Part shown: one piece after another, positions 1 to 42,445 of the stretch | How positions within the stretch are numbered: position 1 is the stretch's first letter | Layout: each line of letters starts with the position of its first letter | Origin: Basidiobolus meristosporus CBS 931.73 | Taxonomy: Eukaryota; Fungi; Basidiobolomycota | Reading direction: 5' to 3' | DNA: 64,000 bases | Assembly (NCBI GenBank): GCA_002104905.1 | Contig: MCFE01000211.1 | Location: 63,748-127,747 of the forward strand | The notes under the pieces: generated by a model | Seen by the model: the letters and a program-made list of their open reading frames with translations, nothing else | The model's database searches: none | What the model was told of the DNA's origin: nothing | Made by a program: the position numbers and the translations under genes

Positions 1-1680
1 ACGAGAAGCCTAGCTTGAAAAGCGATCGATGTAAGTGTCGTCTCTACCTTTCGTGTAAGACCATGGAACTGATATGTCTATTAGTCAACAAAAAAGGAAA
101 GAGGAAGTCTAAGAAGAAGGATCGCTCACCGTCCCCAGAGTTGGCCCCTATTGTTTTCCAACCTGAGGAGATGCCTGAAGATGCTATGGGCTCCGGAAGT
201 GATGACGATTCTAAGCTAGCCAAACCCGTGGCCAAGGCTGGGCTTCTGGATCATGATTTCTCGGGACTACTTTCTGTCGATCTGTCGAAGCCACTAGGTG
301 CTGATGAGGTAATTATACGTTAGGTATCAATGGTAGGTTGTCATACCCCGTTAACCTCGAGACCTTTTATGCAGAAACCGCCACAATTGGCTGCCTATGC
401 AAGCCCTGATGAATTGAGGCGAATGGAAGAGTCCAAGATGTTGAAGAAAAAGGGCAAAGGTGTCAAGAAGGTAACGATTAGGATTTTTTACTGCGCCAAG
501 GAATACGGTCATGAATACGTTGATTACTTCAGGAAAAACCCGCCAAAAGCAAATCCAAGAAATCCAAAAAGAAGGAGGAGCCGGCTGCCATTGAATCCCA
601 GGATTTGATTAACCTGAGTGTGGAGCCCAAACCCGCCAAGGTACTAGCGCTTTTATTGATCGCTTAGATGTACGCTTATTAACTCAACTTGACCATCAGA
701 AATCCAAGAAAAAGTCATCCAAAAAGCCCGAGCGAGAGGCGGAAACTGTAAAAGAAGCTCCGACGGAAGAGCTAATCAACATGTCCAACGACGACAACGC
801 TTCGGAGGTTCTTGCCCAGGACGAAAACGTCACAATAGTAAGTGGACCTTGAGGGCACCTGTTTGCTTGTTAGATTTTGACTTGCCAAATGTAGAAGCAC
901 GCAGTACGCTGTTCCACTGCAGAAAACTCCCAGACAATGTTGGGCACATTTATCCCAGCATTGAGTATCGATTTGGATTTGCACCATCAAGGATCAGATC
1001 ATACTCCCTTGTCAGCTATGGAATTGAGCCTGACCCCATCGGCTAATCTTCGGTATGAACAATTGAATGAACAAAACATCATTCCAATCAACGAACCACT
1101 CTCCCCTGGTGACCGCAAGGTGTTGACCCTAAGGGCATTAGTTCTGGACGAATCTTATGCCGATATGAAATTGCAAGGCTCGTTCTTTTATGTCAAACAG
1201 GTACTGAATTCAATGGCAAACCAACAACATCACGGCATCCCCGTTAACAAGTTTCTTTATTAGCACGAGGATGGAACCATCTCTAGACACTCGGTTGATT
1301 TCGACCATAGTATCCCACTCTCAGTACTTATGGCCCCAGTGGAGCCAATCTCACCAGAAGCCTTCAGCGCTTGTCTCTCGAATTTCGAGGAGTTCCAGCA
1401 CACGGCCACCACTAGCTTCGTAGCCAAGAATGCCACCACTGAGGAGGATTTCAAGAGCGTTCTCAATGCCATCACGCGCATCTGCGGCGTTCATGTTGTC
1501 GAACAAATACCAGGCGCCAGCTCCATTTATGGCAAAGCGATCCAAGGGTTCCAAATTGCAGGACTGATCAAACTGAACGGGCATACAACAGAGGGGATGG
1601 AACTGTCACTACAACTGAAAAGCTCCAATGAGCGATTCATCACCGGATTGGTCCACGCGGTGGAAAGCCAATATCCCTAG
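1..1680 (+). CDS. APL5: AP-3 complex delta subunit, 3' part (spliced; 5' end lies outside the window)
   Basis: Last exon reads ...HVVEQIPGASSIYGKAIQGFQIAGLIK...SQYP*, matching the AP3D1 C-terminal ear/platform motif as I recall it (VVE..D..ASMY.RSIQG..V..LVK). It is preceded by a Lys-rich hinge. GT-AG introns are visible, e.g. 31-84 and 309-374. Internal exon boundaries are only partly resolved. Confidence 0.85.
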
Positions 1681-3119
1681 TCATCTCTCTCTCAACTATA
1701 TATAATATGCATTAATCTAGAAAAGCCTGTGGTGTACATCAACCAGCAGAAATGTCTGCCACCCACATGGATTAGTACGAGTATAGCCTGTAAATAGGTT
1801 TGAAGCCTAGAAATCATCCCATTTTATTTGATGAATAAATTCGACTGTTTCGCTTCCATCGGCACCATCGTCTGTTTCGCCTCCATTGGCTCCACCGACT
1901 CCTTGTATCTCAACGCTCGAGTAGATATTGTGTTCAGGATTGCTCTACAAATGGATCCCATTCATGGATCCCATTCACTCCATCATTGCGACCATATCCA
2001 CCACATATCCACATATATAGCAGCATTGGGTCCAATGGAATCAAGTCATAGTAGCAACATTGTATGCTTCCGTGCTTTAATTGTATAGATTTCATGCGGC
2101 CACGTCAGATCCAATAATCTCGGTTAGGACAATACTCATTTGGATTCATTTCTCTGCCTGATACATTGATACACTGCCTGCAAATCAATGAGATTTGGCT
2201 TAGAGACCAGCTTGATCCATCACCCCTCGAGATTATAAAGTCTCCACGGATCCGCCAGCTCCTCCTTCGCCGCACCCCTTCGCACTTTTCTGAGCACATA
2301 GACCGGCATATACTTGGCTGCCCCACTTCAGATATACATGTACATATACTTTGGTCAGCTTGCTCCAAACCACCACGTAGACTCACCTCTTAGCTATTCC
2401 AGCCAGCTTGCTTCAAATCAACCATAGTACCACGTAGACTCCCCCTTCCATTCATGACTTCCACCGTTAACCCCAAACGAACACTCGACATAGAGATAGG
2501 CGAAGGCCACCGTTTCAAATTTAAAAAGTGCTATCATATCAACCCCTCCAATCCTCTGGTTTCCAGTGCTGCCACAACCCTTACTACCCTGACGATAGAA
2601 TCAGTCAGCACTACTGGGCAACCGGAGAAAGCCTATGTCAAAATGGAATTAGATAGAACAATACCTGATTATGTATTGCGCCGTAGGAACGCTATTGTCC
2701 AGGAGAGCCTGGTGCCGTCTTCTCCCGCTGTTGTGGGTGGAGCGAAAGGAAACTTCTAGGTTTTGTGTCGAGACACGAGCTACATGTGTTATGAAGATCC
2801 GATAGAAACGCTGGGTGCAACTGGGCAATACGCTTTCATCAGTGGATGAGAAGGCAGAACGATCAGATGGTGGATATCTATGTTGAATCACATATTTAAC
2901 TTGCAATACTCAGATTAGAATGGTTCATGTTGCATCATGATCATGGCTTATAAATAATATAATTGTAGTAAAGTAACATTCTCTGGTCTTTTTCCGATTG
3001 TAAATCATGGCTGTGAGCTAAGCCACCGGCATCATTCGCTTAAATTGAGGGGGGGGATTTATTTACATGAGCGTTATCTAAGGAGTGAATTAGGTCCCTT
3101 GGCTTGAAAGCAACCCGCC

Positions 3120-4619
3120 TTAACTGATCATAAGTTTCTGCAGATGCGCGTAGTATTCGGCGTAGTCTAGATATTTGGATGGTTAATACATGTTGCTGCT
3201 TGATGGGGCGATATTGAACGCAGGGCCTACAATCCTCTCTTTCCAGAATCTCTTCTGGATCATACTGCTCTGTTTGCTCAGTAAATTCTAAACTGGTGTC
3301 TATGGCCGGGTTGACTGCCTGTGGTTTGGCGATCATCCCTGTGATGGTGCTCTTCAAATACCAGGCTGGTAAGGCATTTTGCTGCCTAAACATTCAACAA
3401 ATACTTGAGTCCTGTGAATATGGGAACCGCCAGATGTTGGAATGGTACCGTTTCTTTTCAAGCTCCAGCTCACGTGCCCTAGAACTATCCTTCTTGTCAT
3501 CTTCGAATATAATTCGCACCTCTCCTGCAGCCATTCCCGTATCTTGTGCGTAGCTGAGCTCCCGGTCGAATGCAGACGATCCTGTTCACAGAAGGGTTGA
3601 TTAACATCCACGTCCTGTTGGCTGATATGTGAAAGTCTAGCTTACGTGCGCCGGAATCCCCATTTTTAGCGTTTGCATCTTTTGAATCGTCACCAAGGCC
3701 TTCCAGGGAGAAGCTAAAACCAGACAGATGCATTGAGTAGAAATTCAACGGGAACATTCGTCTTACAAACAACTTACGCTGGCATCACAAGATCATCCGT
3801 TAGTTTGAGAAGTTCAATGATTGGCTTCGACTGCTCCATCAACCTGAGTGATATCAACCCCATTAGAACCATTGGACCCCTATGTTTCTTCAGGACATGG
3901 ATCTTACTTCGAATGGAACTCCTCCGAGGATTTCACATTGTCCGCGTTGTCATTTTCCTTTAGCTCACTGCTACAGATCTCACAATGAAAAAGAAAAGTC
4001 GTCATGTCCATGAGCGATTGGACCTCCAGGGCACTGTAGGTTTTTCCGCACATAGGACATACGTATCCCTTATTGTCGAGTTCCTAGCAGGGTGACGAAA
4101 GGGTGAACAAGGCACCAGGACCAGAAGCGCGAGTAAACCTCCCACTTACACTGCGCATCTTGGTTCGGACCAACTCACGCATTTTGTACATCTTCCACTT
4201 CACCACGTCCACAAATTGTTTGTAATCGATATAATAATACGTCTTGTCCACCGCGCGTTGCTCGGGTCTGCGGGACTCCTTCTTCGTCATGCTAGCAAAG
4301 AAACCAACAGCGCTCGTTAAGAAGGTGTGGGGGAGACAAGGGTTGACTTGGTTGGTGTGCACTCACACTTTGATGAGACGATCTTCCTTTAGTTTACCGC
4401 ACACTTTATGGACCTCTCTGATAGGTAACTTTAAATACATGGCCAATTCGTCATCTTTGACTCTAAACGTGCAAAAGTGTAAAATGGTGCAGCGCACTAG
4501 GACAGTACCGCATTCCCTACTTACGTTTCGCTTTTACTCAGAGCATCTAGTACAGCCATGTACTTTGGCTCGTAAAAGGCTCGGCCTACTCTAGCCACCA
4601 GATTTCTAAGGATCTCCAT
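3120..4619 (-). CDS. TFA1: General transcription factor TFIIE alpha (large) subunit, spliced
   Basis: Spliced translation from ATG 4619: MEILRNLVARVGRAFYEPKYMAVLDALSKSET/VKDDELAMYLKLPIREVHKVCGKLKEDRLIK, then KTYYYIDYKQFVDVVKWKM, zinc ribbon YVCPMCGKTY...FHCEICSSEL, and QQNALPAWYLKSTI. Intron 1 is 4463-4524. The 3' end (stop at 3120-3122, or ~3040 if a further short intron is used) is uncertain. Confidence 0.9.
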
Positions 4620-4922
4620 TGAACCAACACCAAGGGAGAAAGGAGGGATAAAGAAAAGAAATCAACCACCCAGCACGAGTAAACCCACCAAAATAAACTC
4701 GATCAAATCAAAAAAACCGCCTATGCATCATCCAGTCACACTCCCGACCAAGCCCAGTGGGTCAAGGGGAATCTGGACAACACACCTCGAATCTGGTTTA
4801 AATCTAAACAACTTTCGGTGATTTCCCAAGGTCAGAGGAGGTCGAAAATTTTTGGGAAAAAAGAACCGGTATATCCCATCAAGTGTGCCCTCTACCACGC
4901 TATACTCCACTCGTATTCTACC
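4620..4922. promoter_or_regulatory. Probable bidirectional promoter shared by TFA1 and TIM22
   Basis: The two start codons (4619 on -, 4923 on +) diverge across ~300 bp. The function is inferred from geometry only. Confidence 0.5.
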
Positions 4923-5495
4923 ATGAACGGGCCCTTCAATAGAGAACCCACACCCAAGGAAGTGGAGCTCATCCACTCCGTCATGGAGTCTTGCCCCTTT
5001 AAGTTCGTCAGTAGTGGTGCGATAGGTTTCGCTCTGGGTGGAGTGTTTGGTATCTTTATGTCCAGCATGGATTTCACACCCCCCGAAGCGATCGAGCAAC
5101 CCACACGAGTCCAGCTCAGAAACATGTTGCGAGATATGGGGAAGAAAAGTTACAGCACAGCCAAGAACTTCGCAGTAGTGGGTGCCATATACTCGGGAAC
5201 CGAATGCATTATCGAAGGGGTATGTATCCCGAGCTCTCGCCCCCTCTGCCCCTTCTCCTAGACTAAACGGTTCTCTTGTCTTAGTATCGCGCCAAGAACG
5301 ACCTGTGGAATAGTGTGTCGGCCGGTTGTATTACCGGAGGAATCTTGGCTGCACCAAGTAAGTTCCTCCTCCTCTGCCCTCAGACACAAGCGACTAACGA
5401 TTGGTTCTTTAGCTGGCCCTAGAGGAGTGGTGTTTGGATGCGGTGGGTTTGCCGCATTCTCAGCCGCGATCGATTACTTCCTTAGAGATCATTGA
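4923..5495 (+). CDS. TIM22: Mitochondrial inner-membrane translocase Tim22 (3 exons)
   Basis: Exons 4923-5219, 5285-5357 and 5413-5495 translate to ...MESCPFK...GFALGGVFGIFMSS...MGKKSYSTAKNFAVVGAIYSGTECIIEG/YRAKNDLWNSVSAGCITGGILAAP/TGPRGVVFGCGGFAAFSAAIDYFLRDH*, the Tim17/22/23 family signature. Introns start GTATGT and GTAAGT and end in TAG. Confidence 0.93.
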
Positions 5496-5733
5496 AGTCA
5501 TTCATAATCTTGTAAATTCTCAATAAATCATTGCATATCCTGTACCCAGCCAACCCGCACGAAACTAGCCTGATCTGTGTGAGGGAAAGATCCGTTTCGA
5601 AGACTACCCAGACTTTATATGAAAATCCCCTTGAAATTACAAATAAACCATTAAACATATACTTTCGCGTGATTAAGAAATCTCCCTGAACATAAGCCAA
5701 AGATGCTGGAGACAAGTCAACTGCATAACTATT

Positions 5734-7116
5734 CTAAGCCTGGGTCTGAGAGAGGCCTTCCTTCTCTTTGACTGGGTCTACGTGAGGCAAGGGAAAGGTT
5801 AGTCGATGAACTGCGAGCAGGGTTGGTCTGAAATGGCTTTACCGAAGTAAGGGTGGTCCATGGCCTCCTTGGGGGTCAACCGCTCTTGGTGGTCGTAGCG
5901 CAGCAGCTTGTCCAGGAAATCCAGGGCGGCGGGAGAGACGTATTTCTGATTCTCGGTTGTGATGAATTTGTTCCAGGGCTTACGGGCGTATCTACCAAGG
6001 ATGGAGTTGTACTGGTTGTCCAAACGGATCTCGTATTTGTCGAGATAGGCGAACAATTCGTCGGTGCCAAGGACCTTGGCGATCTTCACCAACTGATCGT
6101 AGTTGTCCTGGCCGTGGAAGAATGGATCCTTGCGGAAGATCATGCCAGCAAACATGCATCCTAAGCTCCACATGTCCAGTGAGTAATCGTATTCCTGAAG
6201 ATCGACAAGAAGCTCGGGGCCTTTGAAGTATCTGGAGGCGACTCGGACGTTGTATTCGGTGCCAGGGTGATAGAATTCAGCGAGTCCCCAGTCGATGAGG
6301 CGAAGCTACAGGGAGAGTATCATGAATGATCCACCCTTGGGCAAGACAACCTTTCGAGAACTTACCTGACGCTTCTCGTGATCAATCATGACATTGTGTG
6401 GCTTGACGTCCCGATGCATAATTCCCTTAGAGTGACAGAAATCCAATGCCTGGATGCGGGTGCTAGGTAAGTCTCAAAGCTCGCCCCATACAGTGGCCAT
6501 TGAACATTACCTTGAGCAGCTCAAATATATAGTACCGGACGTCATAATCGGTAAACTTAGGATACAAAATCTTGAAGTCGATGTTGTTGATGTGCTCAAA
6601 GATGAGGGAGGGGGTTTTGCTCTAACATATCCGAAGGAAGGGTGTCACCAGGGGGTGCAAAAACGACAAGCGCCAGATGGTCTTACCTGAGGGTCTCTGA
6701 CAACATCGTACAGAGTCACGACGTTGATTCCACCAGCCAGGTTTTGCAAGATCTTGATTTCACGCTTGATCTTCTTCTTGCGTACAGGCTTCAGCACTTT
6801 GATGACCACTTTGCGGTCTTTCGCTATGTCGACCCCCTCGAAGACCTCGGAATATTTTCCACGGCCTACTTTACGTACGATCTCATAGTTTTCTTGGCTC
6901 CTAAACAACAGATGGGGGTGAGAATCTTTCTGAAGGCTGGCGGGAAGCAAACTTCGCCACCACCGGCTGCTTCACGTAGGCCCTTCCCAGCCAACCGCAG
7001 GTAAGGTGGAAGACAACTTACCCCCAGGAAACCTGCAGGTTATCGTAGTCCCAGTACTCTCTGGGGAGGGTTTGGTTCACGTTGGCGTAGGTTCTGGCGA
7101 TACTACGAGACGACAT
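5734..7116 (-). CDS. CKA1: Casein kinase II catalytic alpha subunit, spliced
   Basis: [14 protein letters not shown]...[35 protein letters not shown]...[23 protein letters not shown]...[12 protein letters not shown]...[11 protein letters not shown]...[16 protein letters not shown]...[38 protein letters not shown]...[19 protein letters not shown]. Several short GT-AG introns. Confidence 0.97.
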
Positions 7117-7619
7117 GGCGGTTAGGCGAGGTACGGAGCTTAACAAAGCAACGAGTTTCTAGGTAAACAAACACTCACGAGAAACTTTTGGGCTCATTTG
7201 GGTATTTTTTTCGTGGAGATTTGATTTGGTTTGCATCTCGTCCAATTCCCAACAAATCGCTTTTTCCCGATGCCAGCTTGAGCCATTATTTGGGTGTGTG
7301 TTGGCAAATGAGGGTCGCCCCTGGGGCGGGATTGGCTGCCAAGGGATGTGGATTTGGGATGGATCTCTCTTGGTGCCTGAGATGGCCCTCTCCGTCATGT
7401 GCCAGCGTTTGCTGATGGGTCGAGTCTATATGAGGAGCAAGCGGGATTAATTTACTGCATATATTCTGCGCTTATTATACCGGTGGCCTTGGTTGATGTG
7501 ATGTACGTTTTGATTGAGGCTTCTGGAGAGATGCGGAGGTTTTTAATTGACGTGAGATCTTCCTGAACATATTCCACATGTATATTTTACCAAGTATAAA
7601 AGAGAATGCACCGCTTTTC

Positions 7620-8690
7620 TATTCAAGTCAAAAGTGCCTAATCAACTTGTTACAATGCTCCTGCTCAACCAAATATTCACATGAACTAAATCTACTTGCA
7701 ATCAAAGATATACAAACTTGCCTCTAACCAATAGCTTTGTAAATATGTCTGCAATCAATTGGCCAGTAAGCCAAGATAGGTAACCTATCTTTTATAGCTT
7801 CTCTGAAGAAACCATGGTGAATATCCAGAATCTTGGCTATAGCATGCAGGTTGGATTTCTACCAAATTGGATGTTTCCTTGCCTATTTTGAGATTCAGTG
7901 GTGAAGGATTTTTGATATACCCCCAAGATCATTAAGAAGTCTCCCTACCTCAGTGCTTGCTTTGTGGCCTTGCAGGTATCCATATACTTGGCTTTTGCAG
8001 TGGAAAGTGCCACATTCAGGCTGTTTTCTTGAATATCTAAGCAGATCCTCTACGGGACCTTTCTAATCTTAATGCATGAGTTGTTAGTTTTGCAATTATA
8101 TCCCAGGTATTCACTCAAGCTAGTCACTTGGACTGTAGTCTACAAATCTTAGAGAACCCTGCCAAAAGTTCTTGTTGGCGATTTACTTCAGGTCAATCCC
8201 AAGAAGGAGCATGGTCAGAATTCTCCAAGATTTGTAGGTAATAATATAAGTGACTAAGTTAGGGCAAAATTATAGGTGTAACTAAAAGCTTTTACAGCAG
8301 TCCCACTCAACTAAACTAGTCATATTAGCTAGTCCATAACTGATGATGTAAGGTATCAAATTTGTCTCTAGCTAATGGTATTGTAAATATGTCTGCAAAC
8401 ATTTCATACTGTAGGACAGTAATATAAGGTAACTAAATTATTTGCTATAGCTTTCACTATGAAAAAATGTTTAACATATATGTGCTCAGTCCTAGCATGA
8501 CAAGTTGGATTATTACCTAATTCTATACATCCTTGATATTTTAGAACTATTGAAGTAGGGACTTTTAGACATAGTAAATAATTCTTTAAAAAGTACTCTT
8601 AGACACATTGCTTCCTTTGAAGCCAACAGGCTGCCACATACTCTGTCTCTGTGGTGCCAAGTGCAACAGTTGCTTGCTCTCTTGGATTAT
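7620..8690 (-). mobile_element. Highly decayed Ty1/copia remnants (two RNase H pieces, partial LTR end and PPT)
   Basis: Recognisably similar to the RNase H/PPT/LTR junction of the copia at 9128-13813, e.g. gtcccactcaac at ~8300 vs ctcccactcaac at 9477. No intact ORF. Confidence 0.6.
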
Positions 8691-12100: not shown

Positions 12101-13813
12101 AGCTGGGGGATCAATTTTTACTCCAGAAATTAGCTGATCTTTGATCATTTTGCTCAAATAATCAAAATTGATGTGCCCTAATCTCCTGTGCCAAAGCATT
12201 GATGTTTCCTCATTTAAGTTACTTATATTGGCTTCCAAATATGATGGAATATAAGTCAATCTGTATAGATTCTGATCTCTGATACCCAAAGCAATATGGG
12301 CACCATTTTGATCAGTGATCTTGCATCCAGAATTGTCAAAGCTGAAACTGAGTCCTTCTGCTGTGGCCTTGCTTACAGATAGTAGGTTCTTGGCTATTCC
12401 TGGTACATAGAGTACTTCTTTAAAGGTCAGTGTATGGCTTCCTTCACTGCTTCTTAGGTTTACTTTGATAGTTCCTTCTCCCACTGCATCAAGTGTTCTG
12501 TTGTCACCAATGAAAACCTGCTTAATTGGAATTTCTTGATATTGGGTAAGAAGTTCTTTTTGGTGTGTAAAGTGTTGAGAAGCTCCAGAGTCAATATACA
12601 ACGTCTGAGAATCCTTGTTTGTGGTCATATTTAGTGCAGATATGAATAGTCTATCTTCAGTTGTTGCAGCATTTCCATATTCAGGCTTCTTTGGCTGATT
12701 ATCTTTCTTTTTGAGGCACTAGTCTGATGTGTGTCCTTTCCTTTTGCAGTAGTTGCAAAACAGGTTGCTGTTGCCTTTGTAGGGTCTTTGGTACCTCCTT
12801 TGTTGGCTATCATTGCTTATTAATGCATTTTCTTCTTCCTTCTTATTTGTGCTTGATTTTCTTAATTCTTCATCCAGGAGCCTTCCATATGCGTAATTTA
12901 AGGTCAAATCTTCAGTCCTGGACTCTTGGGCTGATACAAGGCCCTGAAACTTGTCTGTCAGGCTATTCAGGATGGTAATCATCACATCCTCTTCAGTAGT
13001 TGGTACACCCACAGATTCCATCTCATCTACCAGCAGGGTAATTCTGTTAATTAGATTTTTCATTTCTTCTCCTGGCAGCATCTTTGTAGTAGAGAACTTT
13101 TGTCTCAGATACATTTTCTTGGCAGCTGAACATCACTGGTAGGTGTCTTCTAATGCCTTCCAGGCATTCTTTGCCATTTTTGCTCTTGAGCATTGAATAA
13201 GCAAATTGTCTTTAACATTAAGGCAAATGCAGTTAAAGGCACTTTGTTCTTTCTTCTGGTACTTGAAGGCTTCCTCTCCCATGCTTTTAGGAGGGCACTC
13301 TTCTCCCATGACAGTATCCCAAAGGCCTCTTTCTTGTAGCAGCATCTTCATCTTCACCTTCCACACTTAGTAGTTAGATCCATCCAACTTTTCAGCAGAG
13401 GGAAAAATTCCAGTAATAGCAGTAGTAGACATTGCAGAGAGTGACAGCTTGGGGCTCATAACCTGTTGTAAGAGTCTTGGAGATATTGGAAGTGATTGGG
13501 AGAACAAGTAGATTATGTGGTTTTCACTTAATGATTTATTGAATGTAAAAGTAGTATTTATACTTTTACCTGGTCTTGGCATTACAAACATGTAGAATAG
13601 ATTAAGTGAAGGTCCCAAAAACATGTATGCAAGGTTTGGGGCTGTTTGGACAACTTTGAGAATTTTCATGTTCTGGGTACCAGGTATTTTGGTGAAAATA
13701 TTCCAAGTAAATCCCAACAAGGAATTTGGTCAGTATTTTCTAGGATTTGAAGGTGATGATCAAAGTGACTAAGTTAGGTGAATATTTAGGTGGAAATACA
13801 AATTTTAACAACA
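9128..13813 (-). mobile_element. Ty1/copia LTR retrotransposon, family 1, two LTRs, degenerate gag-pol
   Basis: LTRs 13464-13813 (5') and 9128-9476 (3'), TGTTG...CAACA, ~95% identical (about 16 differences counted by eye). TSD GAATC at 9123-9127 and 13814-13818. PBS GGTTATGAGCCC; PPT GAGTGGGAG. Domain order gag (ATG 13432, CCHC knuckle), protease (IDSGAS), integrase (HSDLCG, FIDDYTR), RT (KARLVAKGY, YVDD), RNase H (YSDADWG). Stops and frameshifts present. Confidence 0.95.
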
Positions 13814-15152: not shown

Positions 15153-15866
15153 GAATAAATACCTATCCAGTTCATCCTGTCTTTGCATTTGTTTTGTTGC
15201 ATATGTGTATAAATATTGATTGGAGTTCATGAGAAGTACATAGGGTAAGCGGATACTCTGTAATATCTTTCCAATTCTGTCAAATTTCTCCAGTATCTTG
15301 AGGGGCTTGTTTAGCTTGAAATGCCCATGTACAACTTGGTCATCATTATAGGGATATTGTTGAAAAGCAAATGCATTGCTCCCAGTGGAAAGCTTTTGTT
15401 CAAACAGATACACTCTATCTTAAGTATCTCCAGTTTCTAATTGATTCCATATTCCAGCCAATGGCTTGCAGCTTGCCAACTTTGCTGCAATTTCATGCTG
15501 ACTTCTGCATGTTCTCTCTGTGGGAAGATGATGTTCTTAGTGTTGGAGTTTAGGTAATAATAAAGTGTGTGAGTTATGGAATAATTCCCCTAGACCTCAC
15601 ACAATTAACAGCAGTACCATCCATTGTGCCCAGAAAAGCTGGCTATCTTGCTGATAGCTGGGGTATCTCCAATGCAGATAATAATAGACTTGTTCCGTTG
15701 GATAGTGCCACATAGTGCCAGCCGGTTTATAGTGCCGGATCGATCTGGCACTCTATCACTATCTGGCACTATAATTTCTACCATGATGCCAGTGGTATGA
15801 TACAGTTACTGGTAATTTTACTCAATCTTACTTATGTTGCTCAGAATAGTGCTTTCCTTGCTTTAT

Positions 15867-16751
15867 TTACTCTTCATAATGCTCCAGACACATTTCTCTC
15901 AGTGGATGTCTTCTTGTATGAACATACTGTGCATTAATAAGTATCTTAACTATTTTACCTATTCTGCTGTTTTCACCTATATATGACTTTCCTCTGTATT
16001 TACCTGCCAATATGCTGAATCTCTTCAGATATCCAAATGTGTGCTCTACCCTTACTCTGAAATGATTAAATATCTCATTGTAGAGCTTCTGCTTCCTGCT
16101 AAGCACACCATTCCTTGGCTTCCTATAAGCTGTAATACATCCTAATCTCTGACAATCCTCTCCTATATAGGCCAAGTCTGCCATACATTTCTCCCCTCTA
16201 CTGAATTCAGGATGATTCTCTACCCAGAGTGCTTTGTCATGCCTACTTCCAGCAAATGGCCCACTAAACCAGATGATGTTACCCTCAATGTCAGACAGTG
16301 CTTGAAGCTTCACACAGTGTGCCTTGTACTTGCCAGAATAAAAGTGCCTCTGCCCTCTAGAAGGTCTGTTAATCCTCACTGGGAAGGTATCCAAAATACT
16401 CCTGATATGGAACCTGTTGCTGAACACTCTGGGATATGGAAGTCTATTGGAGCTTCTGAACCTAGTATTCCAAGCTTGCTCTAAGTCATTCATACCCTCT
16501 GCAAGGTGGTTCTCCATTGCTGTCAGCTGGGAATGAAAGCTTCTAGGACTTTTGTTGCCATGGATGGTGGGATGAAACCTTGTAGGGCAATAGTTCTTGT
16601 AATAGCAGAGAAGCTTAACAAGGGATCTCCTTGAGTAGATTGGGGTTGATGGTCCACAATACTTGGAATAGATCTCCTCCAGTGTGTCAAAAGAAAATCC
16701 AGTGGTAGTGATGGGATTGATGAGAAAAGACCATTCAGATGAGTAAGTCAT
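15867..16751 (-). CDS. DDE transposase (DDE_Tnp_4 / Harbinger-IS5-like), 294 aa, intact and intronless
   Basis: Catalytic triad motifs ILD121TFPV..NRP, FYSGKYKAH..KLQ, GPFAGSRHD, AD192LAY and RVRVE236HTFGYLKRF. No internal stop. Confidence 0.9.
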   Translation of the reverse strand: MTYSSEWSFLINPITTTGFSFDTLEEIYSKYCGPSTPIYSRRSLVKLLCYYKNYCPTRFHPTIHGNKSPRSFHSQLTAMENHLAEGMNDLEQAWNTRFRSSNRLPYPRVFSNRFHIRSILDTFPVRINRPSRGQRHFYSGKYKAHCVKLQALSDIEGNIIWFSGPFAGSRHDKALWVENHPEFSRGEKCMADLAYIGEDCQRLGCITAYRKPRNGVLSRKQKLYNEIFNHFRVRVEHTFGYLKRFSILAGKYRGKSYIGENSRIGKIVKILINAQYVHTRRHPLREMCLEHYEE

Positions 16752-17110
16752 ATTAAAATTGATGGATGATTGTATGGAGGCGGTTTGAATTGATTCGGCG
16801 CAATCTGCGTTATTTATCTGATTTTTAACACATTATGGTTAAATCTCCATCAATTGCCATGTATCCCATCATTATGTCGCAAAAATCATCCGCAAACAAT
16901 GCCTTGGTACTTTTATTGATGCTTTAATCATAGGTCTATAATCAAATAGGAAATCTGCGATTGATGTGATCTGATCCATGTCAACGTGATCCGAGATGCA
17001 TCATGCATAATATATGGAAAATTCAACAATCACTTTAGTTTTCATATATATTTCATATAAGTCCAGGTTGATGCCAATATACTGCTGTATAAGTATCCAA
17101 ATCCGTTGCT

Positions 17111-18373
17111 ATGGTCCCCATACCAAGCCTCAACTCATCTTTAGTACAACCCAGACAAAACCCATCCCCCAGCTCACAAGCATGGTCCGGACCGGAAAAG
17201 TCAATGTCGGATCCGTTCGAGTTCTTGCCAAATGATTTTAGTATGGCCCAAGTGTCTATGATGAGCCTTCATACAGATATTTGGGCACTACTGATTAATC
17301 TAGCAGAACTAGATACCTCAGAGAGTCAACAAAGATGGAAGAATTTGAGTAGAAAGCTGTGGCATGAGTTCTACATCAAGATGCCAGCCAATGTATGTAA
17401 AAAGATATATAACAAGACAAGTATTGAAATCAAGAATGAGCTGAGAGTGAGGGGATTTGACAAGGAAGCCGTGCGGGAACGATTCCGTGCGCAATTTGCA
17501 CAGTACGGGCCGGACGCGTCCGTTTGTGCCTCAACTTTGGGAACCAAAGAGATTTTGAATGAGTTTTTGCCTCAAATGACCAATGTACTACGTGATATAT
17601 TAGTAGAGCTAAGTGACTTCCAAGAGCAATATACACAGGACTCATCCAGGCAACAGCTCCAAAGTATCAGACAGAGGGTAAGTGAATACCTTGAGGAATC
17701 AGATGGTGAGCTTCAGGAGGAAGAATACAGACCGCGAGCAACATCGTCCAGATCGCGCCAGCACGCCTTGCTGGATTCCCTACCATCTCTTGCAACCACA
17801 GCACGCCGGCACACGTCAGTCCAGACTACGCCAACACCCTTTACCAGAATGTCCCGCGTCAAGTCAATGCGCATTGAGTCAACGCGTGTCGGGTCAACGC
17901 GCGCGCTTCAGAGCAAAACTACCAGAACTCGCCAAACTGCTCATTTAGACACAAGTCCATTGGAGCGGACCGAGTCGCGTCAACATGCGGCATCACATTG
18001 AACTCAGCCAAGGGCCATCTCAACGCGTCAAGGCGCACCTGCGCGTGCCGTTTTGCCTGACCATCAGCGAGTTACTTCTGGTGAACTGACTGATGATGAC
18101 CAACATGAAGTGACTCAACCACCGGAGCCCTTGGCAAGTAAAAGAACGCGTCAGCGCGTGGCACTACAGGCCGGTTCAGTTGGTTCAGTTGGAGCAATTC
18201 AGCGCGGCCAAGCTGCAGCATCGCACTCATCAACTAGGAGGCAAATTACTGACTATTAATACACAAGTAGCCAAGATGATAGTCAGCCAGGAAGTAGTAT
18301 AGGTGTGCAAAGTGAGTCACTACCAAATGCTTCAGTAGTAATCCCTGTGAGAAAAAAACCCAGGAGAAGATGA
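17111..18373 (+). pseudogene. ORF2 of the PHIS element: Myb/SANT(trihelix)-like N-terminus, long disordered tail, basic C-terminus; two in-frame stops in this copy
   Basis: IWALL...QRWKNLSRKLWHEFYIKMPANVCKKIYNK resembles a trihelix/MADF pattern. The frame continues past TGA 17999-18001 and TAA 18257-18259 to ...VIPVRKKPRRR* at 18373. The copy at 62812+ has CAA and AAA at those two codons. Confidence 0.7.
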
Positions 18374-20535
18374 TGCGATTGCTTTGAATTGCTCACATTT
18401 GTAATGATCCCGACAACCCTTTTTTTTTGCGATCCAAATCGAGCCATCTCAAATCAGTGATCATCAAATTTTTGATATAAGTAATATCAAGGTCGTCTCA
18501 CATTTGAGACAGAACCCCTATAAATAAACACCCTGCATATATATACGTCATCTGTAATACCAGTGCAGCTATTGGATCTGTTTTGCACCTACACAATTGC
18601 TTGCATGCTAGCTATGACACCTTGCCCAATCACTAGGATCAGGGATTTACTTGCTCAATGGGCTAAATGGGATATTTGATGGCGAATCAGGTAGCTTTTT
18701 CAGTAGTCAATGAGCCAATTGGGGGCTGCCAGCTTCAGGATACTTTTGGACCAATTAACCACTGAGATACCGTCCAATTGGAGTGAGGGTAACCAAAATG
18801 GTAAGTATCAGTGTAGTTTATAGTGTGATACACATTTATTTCCATTTACATTAAAGAAACATATCCAAATACCGGATTTTACCTGCCATTATAGCGGTAT
18901 CCGATTGCGCACGTGATGCAAGCATTACAAGTTGGCGCGATCATCCGCGCCAACCTCATCGTGTCAGATTGTGCCATAGTGTGTGAGATTGTCCCGCATA
19001 GTGCGAAATTGTCCAAGAACAATCATGCCTTCTGGTAGCTATAATATCGCGCCCAATCGTTCTTTGCAACCGCGGATCGCGCCACGCGCCCTGGCACAGT
19101 ACGATGGAACAAGTCTAATATGCACTTTGCATGACACCCATATACTGTTATCCTGCTGGAAAGCATACAAACTCACTCAGCAATGGATGCAGGTAGCTAT
19201 CCAGGTTGGATGGCAATTTAGGTCCTGATACCAGTGAGACTACAATCATATTTCTGCACTGATACCATATGATAGGTGGGAGATCCAGGTTAATGAGAAT
19301 CAGTGGCCAGCAGGATTTGCTGGTAGAGTACTTCTTCAATGAGAATACATCAAGTGCTAAGGCAATGGTGTGGTCATAAATACCTTCAAAGTAGCCCTTG
19401 CTTCTTATCTGTTTATGTTACTTGCCATTGAATATATTGGATATATTTGCGCTTGTTTGATACTGAGTGGGGTACTTTATAGCTTTGCAATAGTTGCCAG
19501 ACTGCCTGAGCTTCTGTAGACAGGGTATTACTGGAATATATCCGGAGTGTGAACAATGTTTTCCCTCAACAATGGTGGATTCCTGACAATTTGGACACAT
19601 TGCAATGGTGGCATTTTTGGATGTGAATGCCATGCCACTGTCAACACATGCTGAAATTAGGACAGTCTCTGGGTTGTATATTGCCAGCTGCATGCCGGTT
19701 GTCCACTTGCACCATGTACATGGCAAGTTGCATCCCTGAATGAATTTGGCAAGAAGTAGCGGTAAATCCTCAAGTCTGCATTACCAAAATTAGTGGAAAC
19801 ATGCCACTTCTCTAGCCACAACATTACATCAGTCACCAGTAGATGGATTACTGGCCTCACTTGGCTCCATAAAGTATCCTTGGCACTTGTTTCAACAGGT
19901 GTTGTCTCATTGTGTATTGGGATTTGACTGGTTTCATGTATGGTACTGTTGTTGGGGGAGATAGGCTCACAATCCATGAGTGAGCCTTCTTTGTCAGAGC
20001 TATCACTCTGTATGCCATATTCAAAAGGCTGTGGTGAGCCTAAAGGCATCACAAACTAACCTGACTCAGTTTGCACAAGGTGACAAAGATGGCCAGGTGC
20101 CAATATAGAAGTATCAGCTGGCTTGCAAGATAATGTTTGTTCAGTAGTAACTGATGAATGGTTAAATATGACTTGTGTGGCAAAACACTGGCCATGATCC
20201 TTGTAATACTTCCTATGCTGTCTGCATGCTTCATGGCTGAGAGGCTTGCTACAACAGCCACGTGGTCTTTTTCCTCTTCTCTTAGAGTACTGAATCAAAG
20301 TAGTCTTGTCCATGGGGCAAACAGTTTGACATTCAACAATGTAATGCTATTATAACACTTTTTGGTCAATATTCATGTGAATTTAAGACTGTCTTGTATT
20401 TGAGACATTGCACCTACATGAATGTAAGATTCAATGATGACCTGCCATAGTAAGCATTTTAAATAAAGTTGTGGCACTACATACACATGTATATGTATCA
20501 CTATTTCCCCTTTGGTTTGACTCACTTCCATATAT

Positions 20536-27297: not shown

Positions 27298-29185
27298 AGA
27301 CTTGATCTGATGGATAGTGCCCCACAGTGCTTGCCTGTTTATAGTACAGGATCAATCTGGCACTCTAAAGCACTATCTGGCACTCCAATTTCTACCATAT
27401 TGCCAGTGGTAGGATACAGCAACTGGTATTTTACTCAGTCATAATTATATTGCTCAGAACAGTGCTTTTCTTGCTGCATTTAAAGGATTGTGCTGAGATG
27501 ATTTGATTTGATTTGGCACAATCAGCTTTATTTATCTGATTTTCCATGCACTGTGATTAAATCTCCATCAATTGCCATGTATAAAATTGAGAAAAGGCCA
27601 GCAAAATACCATCATAAAATCAGCTGAATTCCAAGTTTCTCAAAATTGACAACTCTCAATATCTCTATTCTGAGCTGATGCGCAGGCAAGCAAACAAGCC
27701 TCCATACCAAATTTGGTAATAAGCTGCCCATTACTTTCATTAAAAAATTGCATTTGAAATTTGAACCCAAAACACTAGCTCAATAGCAGTAAAATACCAT
27801 TAGAATGCCTGCAGAATACCTGCTAGAAATCAGATGAGTCCCAAGTTTGAGATTTTTCATAGAGATATATATACCAAGACAAGAATTGAAATCAAGAATG
27901 AGCTTAGAGTGAGGGGATTTGATGAGGAAGCCAAATGCAAACAAACCTACATGCAATTTGCACAGTATAGGCTGGACACCTCTGTTTGTGTCTCAGGTTT
28001 GGTAACCAAAGAGATTTGAATGAATTTTTGCCTCAAGTCACTAATGTATTACATGATATATTAATACAGCCAAGTGCCATCCAAGTGCAATATCCATAGG
28101 ACTCATCAAGGCAACAGTTCCAAAGTGTTAGACAGAGGGTAAGCTAATACTATACAGAATCAGAAGACAAGCTTCAAGAGGAAGAATAGAAACTGCAAGC
28201 AATTGCATCCAGATTGCACCAGTACACCTTGCTGGACACCGTACCATCACCTGCAATGATGGCGCACCAGTGCACATCAGTCCAATCTGCACCAACATCT
28301 TTCACAAGAGCACCCCACATTGAGTCAATGCATGTCAGAACAACATGGATGCTTCAGAGCAAAACTACCAGAACTTGCCATACTGCTCATTTAGACAGTA
28401 GTCCATTGGAGCAAGCCAAGTTGCATCAACATGTAACAGACTCAGCTAAGGGCCATGCCAACAAGTCAAGTTGTGCCTATGCATGCTGTTTCACCTGACC
28501 ATTAGCAAGTTACTTCTTGTGAACAGACTGACAATGACCCACATGAAGTGCTTCCACCACTGGAACCTTTAGCAAGTAAAGGAACACATCAGCACATGGC
28601 ACTTCAGGTGGGTTCTGTTATATCATCTGGAGCAATTCAGCATGGCCAAGCTCCAGCATTGCACTCATCAACTACAAGGCAAAATACTAATTACAAGTAC
28701 ACTAGCAGCCAAGATGATAGTCAACAATGAGGTAGTTCAGGTGTTCAAGGTGAATTACTACCAAATGCCACAGTAGTAATCCTTGTGAGAGAAAAACCTA
28801 GGAGAAGATTATGCAATTGTACTGAATTGTCACCATTTGTCATGAAACAAACATCACAGCATTTTGGAATCTAAACTGACCCATTGTAAATCAGTGATCA
28901 TCAAACTTTTGATAAAAGTAATATTATGGTTGTCTCACATTTGAGACAGAGCCCCTATAATAAACACCCTGCAAATAGATACATCATCTGCAGTACTTAT
29001 GCGGCCATTTGATTGAATCTGCACCTGCACAATTGGTTGCATGCCTGCTATGACACTTTGTCCAATCACCAAGATCAGGGATTTACTTGCTCAATTGGCA
29101 AAATGGGATATATGATGGCAAATTAGGTAGCTTTTGTATTGGTCAATGAGCCATTTGGGGGCTAACAGCTTCAGGATACTTTTAT
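27298..29185 (+). mobile_element. PHIS-family copy lacking the transposase; right end truncated
   Basis: Left TIR AGACTTGATC at 27298 preceded by AAT. Left subterminal sequence joins directly to the promoter region at ~27480. Decayed ORF2 at ~27870-28810. Homology stops at ~29185. Confidence 0.85.
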
Positions 29186-29189
29186 ACAA

Positions 29190-32100
29190 ATTGGCATCAA
29201 CATACCATCCCTATACCCAGAACCAACATTTAGCTCAACCTCATACTCAACAAGTAACTCCATTAAATCTACCGCTCATATTGTTTTTGTTGTAGTACTC
29301 TGTTTCCATGACTATAGTGGGAACCCTTCTGCTTAATGTCACTTCTCATTCACAGTTTCCCATATGGCATGGTCTTCAGCCTGCACTGCAAGGTCTGACA
29401 CCTCTTCTGCCAGTCTTTACAACACATCCTTGCAATATTTAAGTGCATCTTCTTGAGCACCGTTCTTCACAAAGGGCTGCAACCTCTTGGCATGCCTATT
29501 GATGTTCAAAAATTCCACTGAAGGCATTGTGACAACCTTTTGAGTTCTTGGTGTTGTTTCTTTGTCTGTCAGTAGAATCTCCACTCTGTCAATAATGGAG
29601 GACATGGAAGCTGTGATAGACAAATTGCTCCTCTCTGCAAACTCATCCACCCCACTGGAGTGTAGCAAAACTGGCTGCATTTCTATGTCTTGTGAGTACA
29701 ATTGTTTTCTAGTAAATAATTCTTATTGGCTATGAAAGGATTAAGTCTGTTTGGGGCTTACAGACTTCATTGGCAAGAACTGCAGCATTTTTCTTATGCC
29801 TCTCTGTCAATGACTTGGGTAGACTCTTTTCCCGTTACCTTTTCCTTGATCATTGCCAGGCCTTTCACTGCTATTTTGTCTGAGTGCTTCTAATGTTGAA
29901 TTATGCTTTCTCCTTGATAAATGCTACTCTGATACTTCTGTGTTAATCCGCTTGTCCCTTGCTGACAGTCAGTGTGCAACTTGATGATTGTTTCTACTTG
30001 TTTTGAGTTCTCAGCCCATGCTATGATGGGTGCCTGTAGTAGTTGCTTTTTTTATCACTGCAAAGTCTATGACTGCTACTTTCACTGAGTTCTTCCTGAG
30101 TGGGGATACACTCTTTCTGTGACAGATGTTGTTCTGGTGCATCTGTTCTGCCTGCTTTTCCTATATTGGCTCTCTTCCAGCTACCCAGTATCCCTTTGAC
30201 TCTTGCTTAGTGCTTTTGACCCTGCTTGTAAAGTGCTCTTAAGGAAGCAGCTAGTTTTTAGCCATTGCACCCTTGTTCCTCTACCTTTAATAGTTTTTGC
30301 TACTCATGAAATACTTTCTTAGCATACCAATGTTGCCCCAAAATCTGTTTGCCTGTTTGAGTCCAGGGAAATACTCATGGAGCAAGTCAAGCACATTCTG
30401 ATTTGCCTTGAGTCCCTGATGGTCCCAAGAAATGCTGGCCTTACAGTGTTGGCTTGCTAGACTTTTAAGGGCCTCTTGAATACCAACCAGCTCTTCATCA
30501 CTGCACTCAACAGCTTCATGGATATTAGATATCTTTTGATTATTAGGCTCCAGTATAAACACTACATTTTTTCCTCCAATGCTGTGATAGGCTTTCTAGG
30601 GGCTCTATCTTTGGGCACTGATACTGTGTGTATGGTGTTCCACTGCTGCTACATTGGGAAATGGCTCAATGCTTGGCCACAACATTCAGCTACTTGAGTT
30701 TTTGCATTGCAGAAAAGATACTGCTTTCTCTACCTGGGATATTGATTGCTCTACATGTGTTATCTGCTTATTCTGTATCTGACTATTTCCTGATTTCTCC
30801 GGGCCATTGCATCTATCCTATCAGTCACTGCATCTAGTTGCCTCATCAATGCTTTGATATGACCTGACAGCATACTTGCTAATATGGGTGGTGGTGATGT
30901 TATTATAGTCACTTGCTGGCCTTCAATTACAGGTACTGCTGTTGCTACATTCTGATCTGCCTCAGCATTATGGTCAGCTTATGACTCTGCAGTAATTCCA
31001 ATTGCGTACTTGACTGAGAGCCTGATGAGCTCACATTGATTCCTTCAGTAGGCACACTGTCCGCAGGGCTTTTTTTGGTTGTAGCCCTGCTTATTTCACT
31101 GAATGTCAAAGCAAGCTATTGTCCAACTGCTCTTGTACTCCTGTCAATGGTGGGGTTTAGTTGGGAACCAGACAATTTTGTGTTATTTTTTGTGGCATAA
31201 GTATGGAGGTAAGTCAAACCAAAGGGGAAATAGTGTTACATATATGTAAGTATGTAATGCCACATCTTTATTTATAATGCTTTCTTTAGTGGGTTAACAC
31301 TGCATCTTAAACTCATGTAGGTGAAATGTCTCAAGGACAGAATTGTGTAAGATTCAAATGAGTATTGAGAAAATATAATAAAATAGTGTTGTGTTGTTAA
31401 GTGTCCAACTGCTTGCCCCATGGATAAGACTTCAATGATTCAACACTGTGAGAGAAGTGAAAAAAGACCATGTGGCTATTATGGCAATCCTCTCAGCCAT
31501 TAAGCATGTTGACTGCATAGGAGGTATTACAAGAATTGTGGCCAATGTTTTCCCACACAAGTAATAGTTGATCATTCACCAGTGACTACTGTTCCAACAA
31601 TATCTTGCTGGCCACTTGATTTTGCAATACAACAACTGGATGTACTTGTCACCCTGCACAAACTGAGTCAGGTGAGTTTGTGATGTCTTTAGGCTTGCCT
31701 TACCTTTCTAAATATGGTATGCAGAGTGATAGCTCCAAAGAAGCAGACTCACTGATGGATTGTGAGCCTATCTTCCCTAACAACAGTACCCTGCATAGGC
31801 CTGGCAAAATCCCATAATGCAACAAGACAACACCAGTGGAGTAAATGCCAAAAATACCCTATGGAGCCAAGTGAGCCCAGTAGTCAATCTACTAGTGAAT
31901 AATGTGATGTTGTGGCCAGAGAAGTGGCATGTTCCCACTACTATCAGTGATAGGGGCATTGAGCATATACTACTACTTCTTGACATAATCATAGTGGGAT
32001 GCAACTTACCATGCACATGGTGTAAATGGATAACTGTCATGCACCTGACAAAATATGTTTACCCTACCACAAATATTGAACAGTTTGCTTTGACACTCTG

Positions 32101-39500: not shown

Positions 39501-41158
39501 ATTAGAACAGTTCTAACCCTGGCAGCTGTACACAGTCTAGATCTACTCAAATGGATGTCAAAACAGCCTTTCTCAATGGGGATTTGCAAGAACCTATATA
39601 TATGGACCAACCAGAAGGTTTCACTGATCCAAAAGACCCTTGTAAGGTGTGCAAACTTCAAAAATTGTTGTATGGGCTTAAGCAGGCACCAAAAGCGTGG
39701 TATAACAAGATTAACACATATCCAGAGGAAATTGGGTTCTCTTGTAGCACTGCAGATCACAGTATTGATGTAAAGCAGCTCAAAAAGGGTGTGATCATCC
39801 TAGTTCTTCATGTGGACAACCTAATTATAGCTACAAGTGACCAAGAGGCACTCAAACAGAAAAAATCAGATCCCTTCAGCAAGTTGGAGATGAAAGATCT
39901 TGAAAATTGAGGTATTTTCTAGGAATTGAAGTCAAATTTGTCAAACCTACGCAGAAAACGGTGCTGAATCAGTCCAAGTACATCAGGGATGCTCTTAGAT
40001 ACTTCATAATGGGAAATTGCAAACCTGCAGCTACATCTGTGGACAACAACCTGAATTCAAGCAAACCTCGGCCAGTTATAGATGAAAATGGCTCAAAAAA
40101 GGACCAAAACTTTCCCTAACAATCAATGGTTGGTAGCCTAATGTACTTGATGATGTCTACATGCCCAGATATTGCAGTGGCAGTTGGAATAGTCAGTCAA
40201 TTCATGCAGCATTATGGATCAGATCAAATTGCAGCAGTTAAGCGGATTTTCAGATATCTACAAGGTACTATAAATATGGTACTGGAATACTCTGGAGTAG
40301 CTAATAGGCAAAAATTTGATGATTACAGTGATTCAGATTAGGGTAGGCATCTGATTGACAGATGCACTACCACAGGCTATATATTTTTTTATGCTGGTGC
40401 AGCTATTACTTGGAGTTGCAAGAAACAACCAACTGTGGCCCTATCTACAACTGAAGCAGAAAATATGGCTGCATGTCAAGCAAATACGGAGGCTATACAG
40501 CTACAAAAATTATTCAAAGACTTGGGTTTTAATTCAGATGAACCAACATGTATTTACCAGGATAATCAAATTTTATCTCATTAGCTAGAAATCCTTCTAA
40601 TCATGCCAGAACTAAGCACATTGATAAAAGCATAACTTTGTGAGGGAAGCTGTTGAAAATAACTTAGTAGAGTTAGTGTACTGCCCAACTAACAAAATGG
40701 AGGCAGATATATTGACAAAACCACTAGATAGGTCACTATTTGAGAATCTCATGGAGGAATTAGGATTAAAAAATTACTTAGTTGAGGGGGAGTGCTGAAT
40801 ATTGGACTATTTTGTATCTCTCTGCAGCTAAAAATTTACTTAACAATTCAGGACTAGTCTTGTTCACTGTGGGACTAATTACAGCTCTTACTTTGCCACT
40901 TTCTTCAGATCTACAATCTTTTGATTTTTCCCTTACAGCCAGGATAAAATTCGCACCATTACTAAACATTATGTGCTAACCCTGAACTGTTACAGAATGC
41001 TCCTGAATATTGAAAAACCCTCCTTACTTAGTGTTACTGCTGTATTACTCCTACAAAGGTATAAATTCTGAGCTTCTTTATTGAAAAACAACAGTTCAGC
41101 TATTATCACTATTTCTAGATAAGTACCTTATATCTAGATTACTTCTTAAATTGCAACA
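36559..41158 (+). mobile_element. Ty1/copia LTR retrotransposon, family 2, two LTRs, degenerate gag-pol
   Basis: LTRs 36559-36926 and 40793-41158; TSD GTCAC at 36554-36558 and 41159-41163. PBS GGTTATGAGCCC at 36927-36938; PPT GAGGGGGAG. Gag (ATG 36963, CCHC), integrase (HSDICG, FIDDKTR), RT (KARLVAKGY), RNase H. Confidence 0.93.
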
Positions 41159-42237: not shown

Positions 42238-42445
42238 ATGGACCTGGATAGTGCAATGTATTTTTGTGACATGTTACAAGCCACAGGATCTAGATTCAGA
42301 GTGTCCATGGGTATTGAGTATCTGATGCATGCCTTTAGCTCTTCTGTGCTCTTACACATTCTTCATAACATTGATCCTCAGAAAAACATCAAAAAAAGGA
42401 CTTTTCTCCTGCATCATACATGAAGCACAGGGGCTGCTTGGCATG
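42238..42445 (+). mobile_element. Internal fragment of the PHIS-family foldback MITE
   Basis: Collinear with the MITE right arm (gatagtgc...tttttgtgacat...ccatgggtattgagta). No TIR. Confidence 0.7.

Follow-up and report, generated by a model that had tools for sequence, protein, structure and literature searches.

We analysed a stretch of 64,000 nucleotides (nt) of the Basidiobolus meristosporus CBS 931.73 genome (assembly GCA_002104905.1, contig MCFE01000211.1, positions 63,748 to 127,747), hereafter called the window, whose own numbering is used throughout. It bears a complete DNA transposon of the PHIS superfamily (copy c1) with two intact open reading frames (ORFs) established head to head. 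The first one encodes a DDE transposase and contains no CG dinucleotide (CpG), whereas the partner gene and the flanking parts of the element are CpG-normal. The following features were annotated:

15683-15685, no strand: left target-site duplication (TSD), AAT (5'-ANT-3'), identical to the AAT after the right end
15686-19116, no strand: complete autonomous Pangu-type PHIS DNA transposon, copy c1, 3,431 bp, with inverted terminal repeats and two intact head-to-head ORFs
15686-15710, plus strand: left terminal inverted repeat (TIR), starting with AG (AGACTTG), one of an inverted pair
15702-15774, no strand: left subterminal ATAGTGCC repeats, three direct and one inverted, holding all 4 left-end CGs
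15743-16780, no strand: CpG-free zone, comprising ORF1, 124 bp past its stop and 29 bp ahead of its ATG
15867-16751, minus strand: ORF1, DDE transposase (DDE_Tnp_4, Pfam E-value = 1.2e-23), 294 aa, 885 bp, intact
16752-17110, no strand: intergenic DNA separating the divergent ORFs, presumably a two-way promoter, 10 CG against 9.8-10.5 expected
17111-18001, plus strand: ORF2, partner protein of 296 aa with no fold assigned, 42 CG
17220-17469, plus strand: CG-free stretch inside ORF2, 0 CG against 8.7 expected, its first part being a 48-aa block conserved with the second lineage described below
17470-18222, no strand: densest CpG patch, the 3' half of ORF2 and ~220 bp beyond, 51-56% G+C, CpG observed-to-expected ratio (o/e) ~1.0
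18873-19102, no strand: CpG-dense right subterminal region, with three of the four ATCGCGCC copies
19092-19116, minus strand: right TIR, the other member of the inverted pair
19117-19119, no strand: right TSD, AAT

A recount of the zone between 15743 and 16780 (1,038 bp, 40.8% G+C) gave 0 CG, in agreement with an earlier note on this DNA, while 43.1 are expected from base composition (the note had put this at 30-40) and GC occurs 42 times. The zone covers the whole of ORF1 and its closest bordering CGs are located at 15741 and 16781. Every one of the 28 Arg codons of ORF1 is AGA or AGG and none of its 54 four-fold Ser, Pro, Thr and Ala codons is NCG, both as previously claimed. Additionally, none of the 53 possible C|G codon boundaries is used, while 63 of the 190 other codons with that option end in C. 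Permutation of the gene's own synonymous codons gave a mean of 12 CG and never reached 0 CG in 5,000 trials, and the same protein rewritten with the codon usage of ORF2 would hold ~40 CG. Among the codon-boundary dinucleotides CG alone is strongly avoided (z = -4.5). With zero CpG sites, the gene in effect escapes both CpG methylation and CpG decay or hypermutation, as had been suggested.

A CG-free kilobase as such is ordinary in this window, which has 13 longer CG-free gaps, because the repeats that fill it from ~8,000 to 64,000 have a CpG o/e of ~0.05. The unusual point is an intact CpG-free gene adjoining sequence with the expected CpG. Outside the zone the element has a CpG o/e of 0.84, with 96 CGs in the other 2.3 kb, and is thus CpG-normal and not enriched; its CGs are clumped (dispersion index 2.4), leaving four CG-free gaps of 250, 152, 140 and 135 bp. 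The previous description of an otherwise CpG-rich young transposon is consequently right about youth (6,262 contigs at ≥99% identity) but not about CpG richness, while the ten CGs reported in 17470-17522 and the CG-dense right end are both present. In five separate regions of the two lineages the observed and expected CG counts were 4/3.9, 10/9.8, 42/51, 46/57.6 and 24/24.9. The G+C content is ~40% in the CpG-free zone vs 51-56% in the densest CpG patch, with a sharp composition edge at 16781.

The nearest relative in public data (P0001/P0152), here termed lineage 2 in contrast to the lineage 1 of c1, is represented by four contigs (L001, L004-L006) of at most 1.8 kb each, and its transposase has 62% amino-acid identity with ORF1. 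The lineage 2 ORF harbors 0-1 CG in 885 bp, while the 667 bp upstream of it hold 24 CG against 24.9 expected. Its CpG-free zone has the same extent as in lineage 1, opening 16-44 bp ahead of the ATG and closing 105-135 bp past the stop, and CG at codon boundaries is likewise avoided (z = -4.3). The sole CG in any lineage 2 ORF falls in a variable codon (K/R/H). Both lineages share the terminal repeat, the subterminal ATAGTGCC motif array, the ANT duplications and a divergently oriented ORF2. In the latter, a block of 48 aa shows 63% identity between c1 and the ORF that precedes the lineage 2 transposase; ORF1 and the alignable part of ORF2 are therefore equally diverged (62 and 63% amino-acid identity). 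Between the lineages the proportion of nonsynonymous differences (pN) is 0.23 and that of synonymous differences (pS) 0.77, which is saturated, while within lineage 2 the ratio of nonsynonymous to synonymous substitution rates (dN/dS) is ~0.09. Thus the two genes evolved jointly, with purifying selection acting on both. Since synonymous sites are saturated and ORF1 is nevertheless CpG-free in both lineages, a continuing CpG-specific force must act on ORF1; full synonymous turnover would otherwise restore ~20 CGs. More distant relatives elsewhere (34-40% amino-acid identity) have an ORF CpG o/e of 0.67-0.85 and use CGN for 30-73% of the conserved Arg, thus the CpG-free state is not a trait of the protein family. 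Nor is it host codon usage, since host exons use CGN for 16 of 24 Arg. The CpG absence of ORF1 is a heritable, old and CpG-specific property of the element lineage and not of c1 alone. The intact ORF1, the 96 CGs in the other 2.3 kb and the sharing of the CpG-free state with lineage 2 also bear out the earlier claim that post-insertion decay is not the cause. Intergenic DNA could not be aligned between the lineages and the CG-containing words common to both upstream regions were not clearly above chance. Within lineage 2 the deficit of CpG-involving polymorphism was not significant (1 of 27 transitions vs 14.5% expected, P = 0.08). Metagenomes scanned with the protein and with the terminal-repeat pattern gave no further copies or relatives.

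The window also records what happens to CpG in dead repeats. Its CpG o/e is ~0.75 across the host genes at 1-7,500 (0.79 in host exons), against the ~0.05 of the repeats. TG and CA have an o/e of 1.36 and TA of 0.77, and CAG/CTG (CHG) is not depleted. Further members of the family are located as follows:

27298-29192, plus strand: c4, old non-autonomous derivative lacking c1 15870-16767, almost exactly ORF1
43727-46461, plus strand: c2, older 5'-truncated copy, 85% identical, CpGs eroded
60658-61389, plus strand: derivative of 732 bp resembling a miniature inverted-repeat transposable element (MITE), with the family terminal repeats
62812-64000, minus strand: c3, cut by the window end, 93% identical

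The CG positions of c1 read TG or CA in the older copies, both products being interspersed on the two strands. Specifically, 17 of 51 CpGs are kept in c3 at 4% non-CpG divergence, 14 of 89 in c2 at 10-13% and 0 of 63 in c4. Overall, 67-100% of the CpGs in dead copies have become TG/CA at 4-13% other divergence, and CpG change exceeds other change there at least 13-fold. In c3 the kept CpGs lie in denser clumps (p = 0.015), while density has no effect in c2 and all CpGs are lost in c4. ORF2 of c2 is broken by 3 stops and by indels, and of its 54 amino-acid changes 23 fall on former CpGs. The surviving ORF1 fragment of the same copy is 7.6% diverged vs 11-14% in other parts (the conserved ORF2 stretch excepted). 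This footprint is CpG-specific, without TpA enrichment or CHG depletion, and therefore fits deamination of 5-methylcytosine (5mC) rather than repeat-induced point mutation (RIP) of the Neurospora type. Judging from these signatures, 5mC deamination is most likely the source of the C-to-T stripping of CpG from the repeats. Neurospora-type RIP, i.e., C-to-T mainly at CpA with an excess of TpA, was considered and rejected, given the TA o/e of 0.77 and CA o/e of 1.36. The Basidiobolus process resembles it as a repeat-restricted C-to-T hypermutation in a fungus, but the target is CpG only, the TpA o/e is 0.77 and TG and CA are intermixed instead of being sorted by strand. A CDCA7-type protein has been noted in B. 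meristosporus (PMC10538959).

Regarding classification, the catalytic core of ORF1 matches DDE_Tnp_4 (E-value = 1.2e-23) and DDE_Tnp_1 (E-value = 5.8e-11), which assigns the element to the PHIS superfamily (PIF/Harbinger-ISL2EU-Spy-Pangu-Nuwa). Within it, the Pangu group has 3-bp 5'-ANT-3' TSDs, TIRs of 11-40 bp starting with AG or GG and autonomous members of ~3.5 kb; one of their two ORFs codes for a DDE transposase with no additional domain, the other has no known motif, and their hosts include fungi (PMC4482050). All of these structural marks were found in c1 (ANT TSD, AG-starting TIR, 3,431 bp, two ORFs with a motif-less second), and by such marks the element is Pangu-type. The likeness extends to the PIF/Harbinger-IS5-type DDE transposase, while the Pangu paper is silent on CpG content and lists few potentially active families, in contrast to the intact and extremely abundant Basidiobolus element (PMC4482050). 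A cyanobacterial transposase stood among the three word-index matches to ORF1, only a hint toward the bacterial-IS5-adjacent Pangu clade. The inverted pair 15681-15710/19092-19121 measures ~25-30 nt and is 80% complementary, with the outer 11-12 bases perfect. The target duplications are AAT at c1, c2, c3, c4 and L006, ATT at L004 and AGT at a solo end, while one MITE end has TAT/ATT. The strict-sense PIF/Harbinger group has TWA-type TSDs (TAA/TTA), from which those found here (AAT, ATT or AGT) differ. Very abundant and recently active, the family accounts for around 24,000 contigs of one sequencing run that map on the element, with ≥99% identity in 6,262 of these.

In an alignment of 14 family members 25 columns are invariant, and the ORF1 protein agrees with all of them. 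Three of these columns hold conserved acidic residues (D, D, E), the putative DDE triad. Judged by its substitution pattern, the protein is under purifying selection. We found no record of the exact ORF1 product. For ORF2, whose counterpart in strict-sense PIF/Harbinger elements has a Myb/SANT-like DNA-binding domain, no Pfam family was found even at an E-value of 10, the single row returned being a sub-threshold chance match. A word-index search gave no homologue of ORF2, and there was no usable Atlas match. A single-sequence AlphaFold model of ORF2 predicts a helical core at residues 45-203 with disordered tails, at low confidence (predicted local distance difference test, pLDDT, 58).

In the element, ATCGCGCC occurs 4 times (at 17752, 18934, 19046 and 19076) against 0.05 expected, while between 16781 and 19116 CGCG occurs 20 times against 5 expected and ACGCGT 4 times against 0.3 expected. 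The ACGCGT copies are located at 17514, 17882, 18023 and 18146, and their letters are identical to the yeast MluI cell-cycle box; together with ATCGCGCC they are candidate binding sites. An A/T-rich box at 16810-16818, which we read as possibly TATA-like, recurs in L004 (~605-613), in each lineage ~60 bp ahead of the ORF1 start codon. In both, this box is followed by a four-CG cluster and then by the CG-free zone, and an AATAAA signal overlaps or directly follows the ORF1 stop codon.

The CpG split is real, inherited and old, and selection, patterned methylation or maintained clumps may be its cause. Mutation protection alone cannot yield it, therefore either methylation is patterned within active elements or the presence of CpG is itself selected against. 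Our preference, held tentatively and with somewhat less than even confidence, is for a copy-level selection that disfavors CpG in the transposase gene, a form of target-site avoidance. That the force is selection rather than local mutation pressure, and what exactly is its target, we infer. Copies with CpG in the transposase gene would be silenced or inactivated sooner by a host CpG-directed system, and the lineages that persist would be those with every Arg as AGA/AGG and no C ahead of G. The outcome would be a gene open neither to CpG methylation nor to CpG decay, while clumped CpGs would persist in the promoter region, in most of ORF2 and in the subterminal parts, and would erode rapidly after silencing. 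Selection, if it is the cause, probably acts on methylation itself, via recognition or via expression of the methylated copy. Since the neutral flanks stand at the expected CpG in both lineages, unmethylatable expression or non-recognition is favored over mere mutation protection. In Neurospora and Ascobolus methylation blocks elongation and not initiation of transcription, thus a CpG-free transcribed region would be useful and promoter CpGs would be harmless.

Several observations weigh against selection on the gene itself. Simple mutation-proofing had to be rejected, because a decay strong enough to purge essential codons would erode the neutral flanks too, and these are CpG-normal. The CG-free zone also extends into non-coding DNA: in each lineage it runs on for 105-135 bp beyond the stop, a length for which 3.3-5 CG would be expected. 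Variable codons of ORF1 are CpG-free as well, and the CpG-free state looks like a property of the region and not of constrained codons. ORF2, presumably needed as well, is not protected from CpG. Its own CG-free stretch is not common to both lineages, since the corresponding conserved block of lineage 2 contains 3 CGs. Finally, the CG count of ORF1 is statistically equal to the equilibrium of dead repeats (~1.9 expected at an o/e of 0.05). A rule by which CpG is absent wherever the protein is constrained would suit the ORF2 stretch of lineage 1; it was dropped in view of the 3 CGs of lineage 2.

One alternative is region-limited methylation, according to which only the transposase transcription unit is methylated in active copies, in a gene-body-like or small-RNA-directed manner, and passive deamination clears CpG there, while promoter, ORF2 and ends stay unmethylated like CpG islands. 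Protein selection would merely steer Arg to AGA/AGG, with no selection for CpG absence. We consider this mechanism unlikely. In its favor, the zone of each lineage reaches past the stop into non-coding DNA and begins near the ATG beside the conserved TATA-like box, variable codons are cleared and the CpG level of ORF1 is that of dead repeats. Flanks with the expected CpG would suit sequence never methylated while active, and the CpGs retained in c3 lie in the denser clumps. This density effect, however, is absent in c2 and c4. Moreover, the mechanism needs an unexplained difference between ORF1 and ORF2, the 3' half of ORF2 being the most CpG-dense part, and its 5' edge, 16-44 bp from the ATG in both lineages, is sharper than in gene-body methylation elsewhere. 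Fungi with 5mC methylate whole transposons as a rule, and to our knowledge gene-body methylation has not been described for fungi; both points count against it.

Alternatively, the CpG-free state may be the baseline and nothing has been recoded: the whole active lineage would be eroding, with ORF1 at equilibrium, and the CpG clumps, as binding or control motifs, would be kept by selection with turnover of sites. This too we regard as improbable. It gains from the clumping of the CGs outside ORF1 and the enrichment of CGCG, ACGCGT and ATCGCGCC, from the subterminal motif arrays that hold the end CpGs in both lineages and from the fact that every other repeat in the window is CpG-stripped. On the other hand, five regions near the CG count expected from composition point to the lack of any CpG-specific force and not to a balance against a decay at least 13-fold faster, and the intergenic DNA is not alignable between the lineages, with common CG words not clearly above chance. 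Copy-level selection and CpG clumps maintained on an eroded baseline are compatible and can both be true.

A further reading, which we hold to be rather doubtful, is that the element is partitioned by design. The unmethylatable and undecayable transposase gene would stand beside CpG clumps (promoter, 3' half of ORF2, subterminal arrays) acting as a methylation-read switch, by which host methylation would turn off ORF2 and the ends as a self-limitation of copy number, and the surviving enzyme gene would be able to restart the family. If true, the partition would amount, in a fungus and with two genes, to an analogue of the epigenetic switch of Spm to which a complete avoidance of target sites has been added. 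Deliberate recoding, and a design of protected enzyme and silenceable regulator, as put forward in the earlier note, are hypothetical.

The earlier note had also put forward a recent chimera of two lineages. In that case, or through horizontal arrival, a CpG-free transposase cassette would have been joined to the CpG-normal ORF2 and right half of another lineage or host. The sharp composition edge at 16781 (40% vs 51-56% G+C) and the lack of almost exactly ORF1 in c4 could be read this way. The proposal does not survive comparison with lineage 2, which has the same layout and the same split, with ORF1 and the ORF2 block equally diverged (62 and 63%). In addition, synonymous sites are saturated, thus a CpG absence that was only inherited could not have lasted unless a force kept acting. 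The older c2 and c4 already possessed this right half, with CpG sites where c1 has them; we therefore consider a chimera very unlikely. Chance, or ordinary decay of a single copy that left the ORF open, can hardly be the explanation even in a window where CG-free kilobases are common among repeats, since c1 is undamaged, its TSD is perfect, thousands of contigs match it at ≥99% identity, its other 2.3 kb keep 96 CGs, 0 CG was never reached in 5,000 codon permutations and the same state is found in four lineage 2 contigs.

Contrasts of this kind within one element have parallels. Human LINE-1 has a CpG-rich, methylation-controlled promoter in its 5' untranslated region beside CpG-poor ORFs, in a CpG-methylating genome. 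It differs in that its ORFs are CpG-poor and not CpG-free, its second gene is not CpG-rich, and it is a retrotransposon whose animal host is methylated globally. In maize En/Spm, methylation of a CpG-rich promoter and downstream control region sets activity, and TnpA binds CpG-containing subterminal repeats. The Basidiobolus element is alike in being a DNA transposon with CpG-dense control regions and subterminal arrays which could act as a methylation switch; we know of no CpG-free transposase gene described for Spm.

Closer in kind are the transposons of Microbotryum, in which the TpCpG target of a RIP-like hypermutation is scarce at nonsynonymous positions, a paucity read as counter-adaptation of the elements (Hood et al., 2005, as cited in PMC3318451). 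The earlier statement that no description is known was therefore too strong. In both fungi transposon coding sequence is depleted of the host target where hits alter the protein, and in Basidiobolus the target is hit in dead copies. In contrast to Microbotryum, the Basidiobolus target is every CpG and not TpCpG, and depletion is total, including synonymous positions, variable codons and some non-coding DNA. It also affects one of two genes while the rest is at the expected CpG, and the host is a zoopagomycete and not a basidiomycete.

Our literature searches turned up neither this element nor any CpG-free transposase gene of a fungus. The Pangu/PHIS group is already known, and so are the ideas that fungal repeats lose CpG by erosion and that transposons avoid target sites. 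What we did not find described is their combination, with CpG wholly absent from one gene of a two-gene DNA transposon, in two deeply diverged lineages, beside CpG-normal neighbors and in a zoopagomycete host. Should selection prove to be the cause, the element would offer an unusually clean example of transposon coding sequence adapting to a CpG-directed host defence. The comparison has an internal control, since the gene kept at zero targets for a long evolutionary time in both lineages is adjoined by a partner gene and flanks with normal CpG. The host is an early-diverging fungus, a group in which 5mC is thought marginal, and its footprint is a strong CpG erosion restricted to repeats. Patterned methylation and selection against CpG are both testable with existing long-read methods.

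A second sample under the same species label (runs X5 and X6) gave ~90-100 contigs of the element at 80-95% identity and none at ≥99%, therefore the young burst may be strain-specific. No contigs of these runs cover 17756-17870 or 19021-19116, and the CpG-dense parts of the element may be the least conserved ones in that sample. Concerning the other copies, the left end of c4 is joined straight to the promoter region, with the ORF1 stop codon kept, 16 bp of the leader gone and 3 filler bases at the joint. The match of this deletion to the ORF1 borders may be due to chance or may represent a recurrent partner form without ORF1. A solo family end at 60150-60184 is flanked by AGT. The longest CG-free gap in the window (40952-44564, 3.6 kb) extends into the 5' part of c2.

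Finally, the host-gene part of the window contains the following exons:

4818-5261: Tim22 exon, 93% identical to the B. ranarum protein (next best match 58%)
5799-6173 and 6645-6950, minus strand: casein kinase 2 alpha exons

The border between the host genes (46-49% G+C) and the 56 kb of repeats is sharp and lies near 7,500-8,000. Beyond it, a copia-type gag remnant (Retrotran_gag_2, E-value = 1.7e-17) is located at 12719-13114, together with other decayed retroelement ORFs, all of them CpG-stripped.

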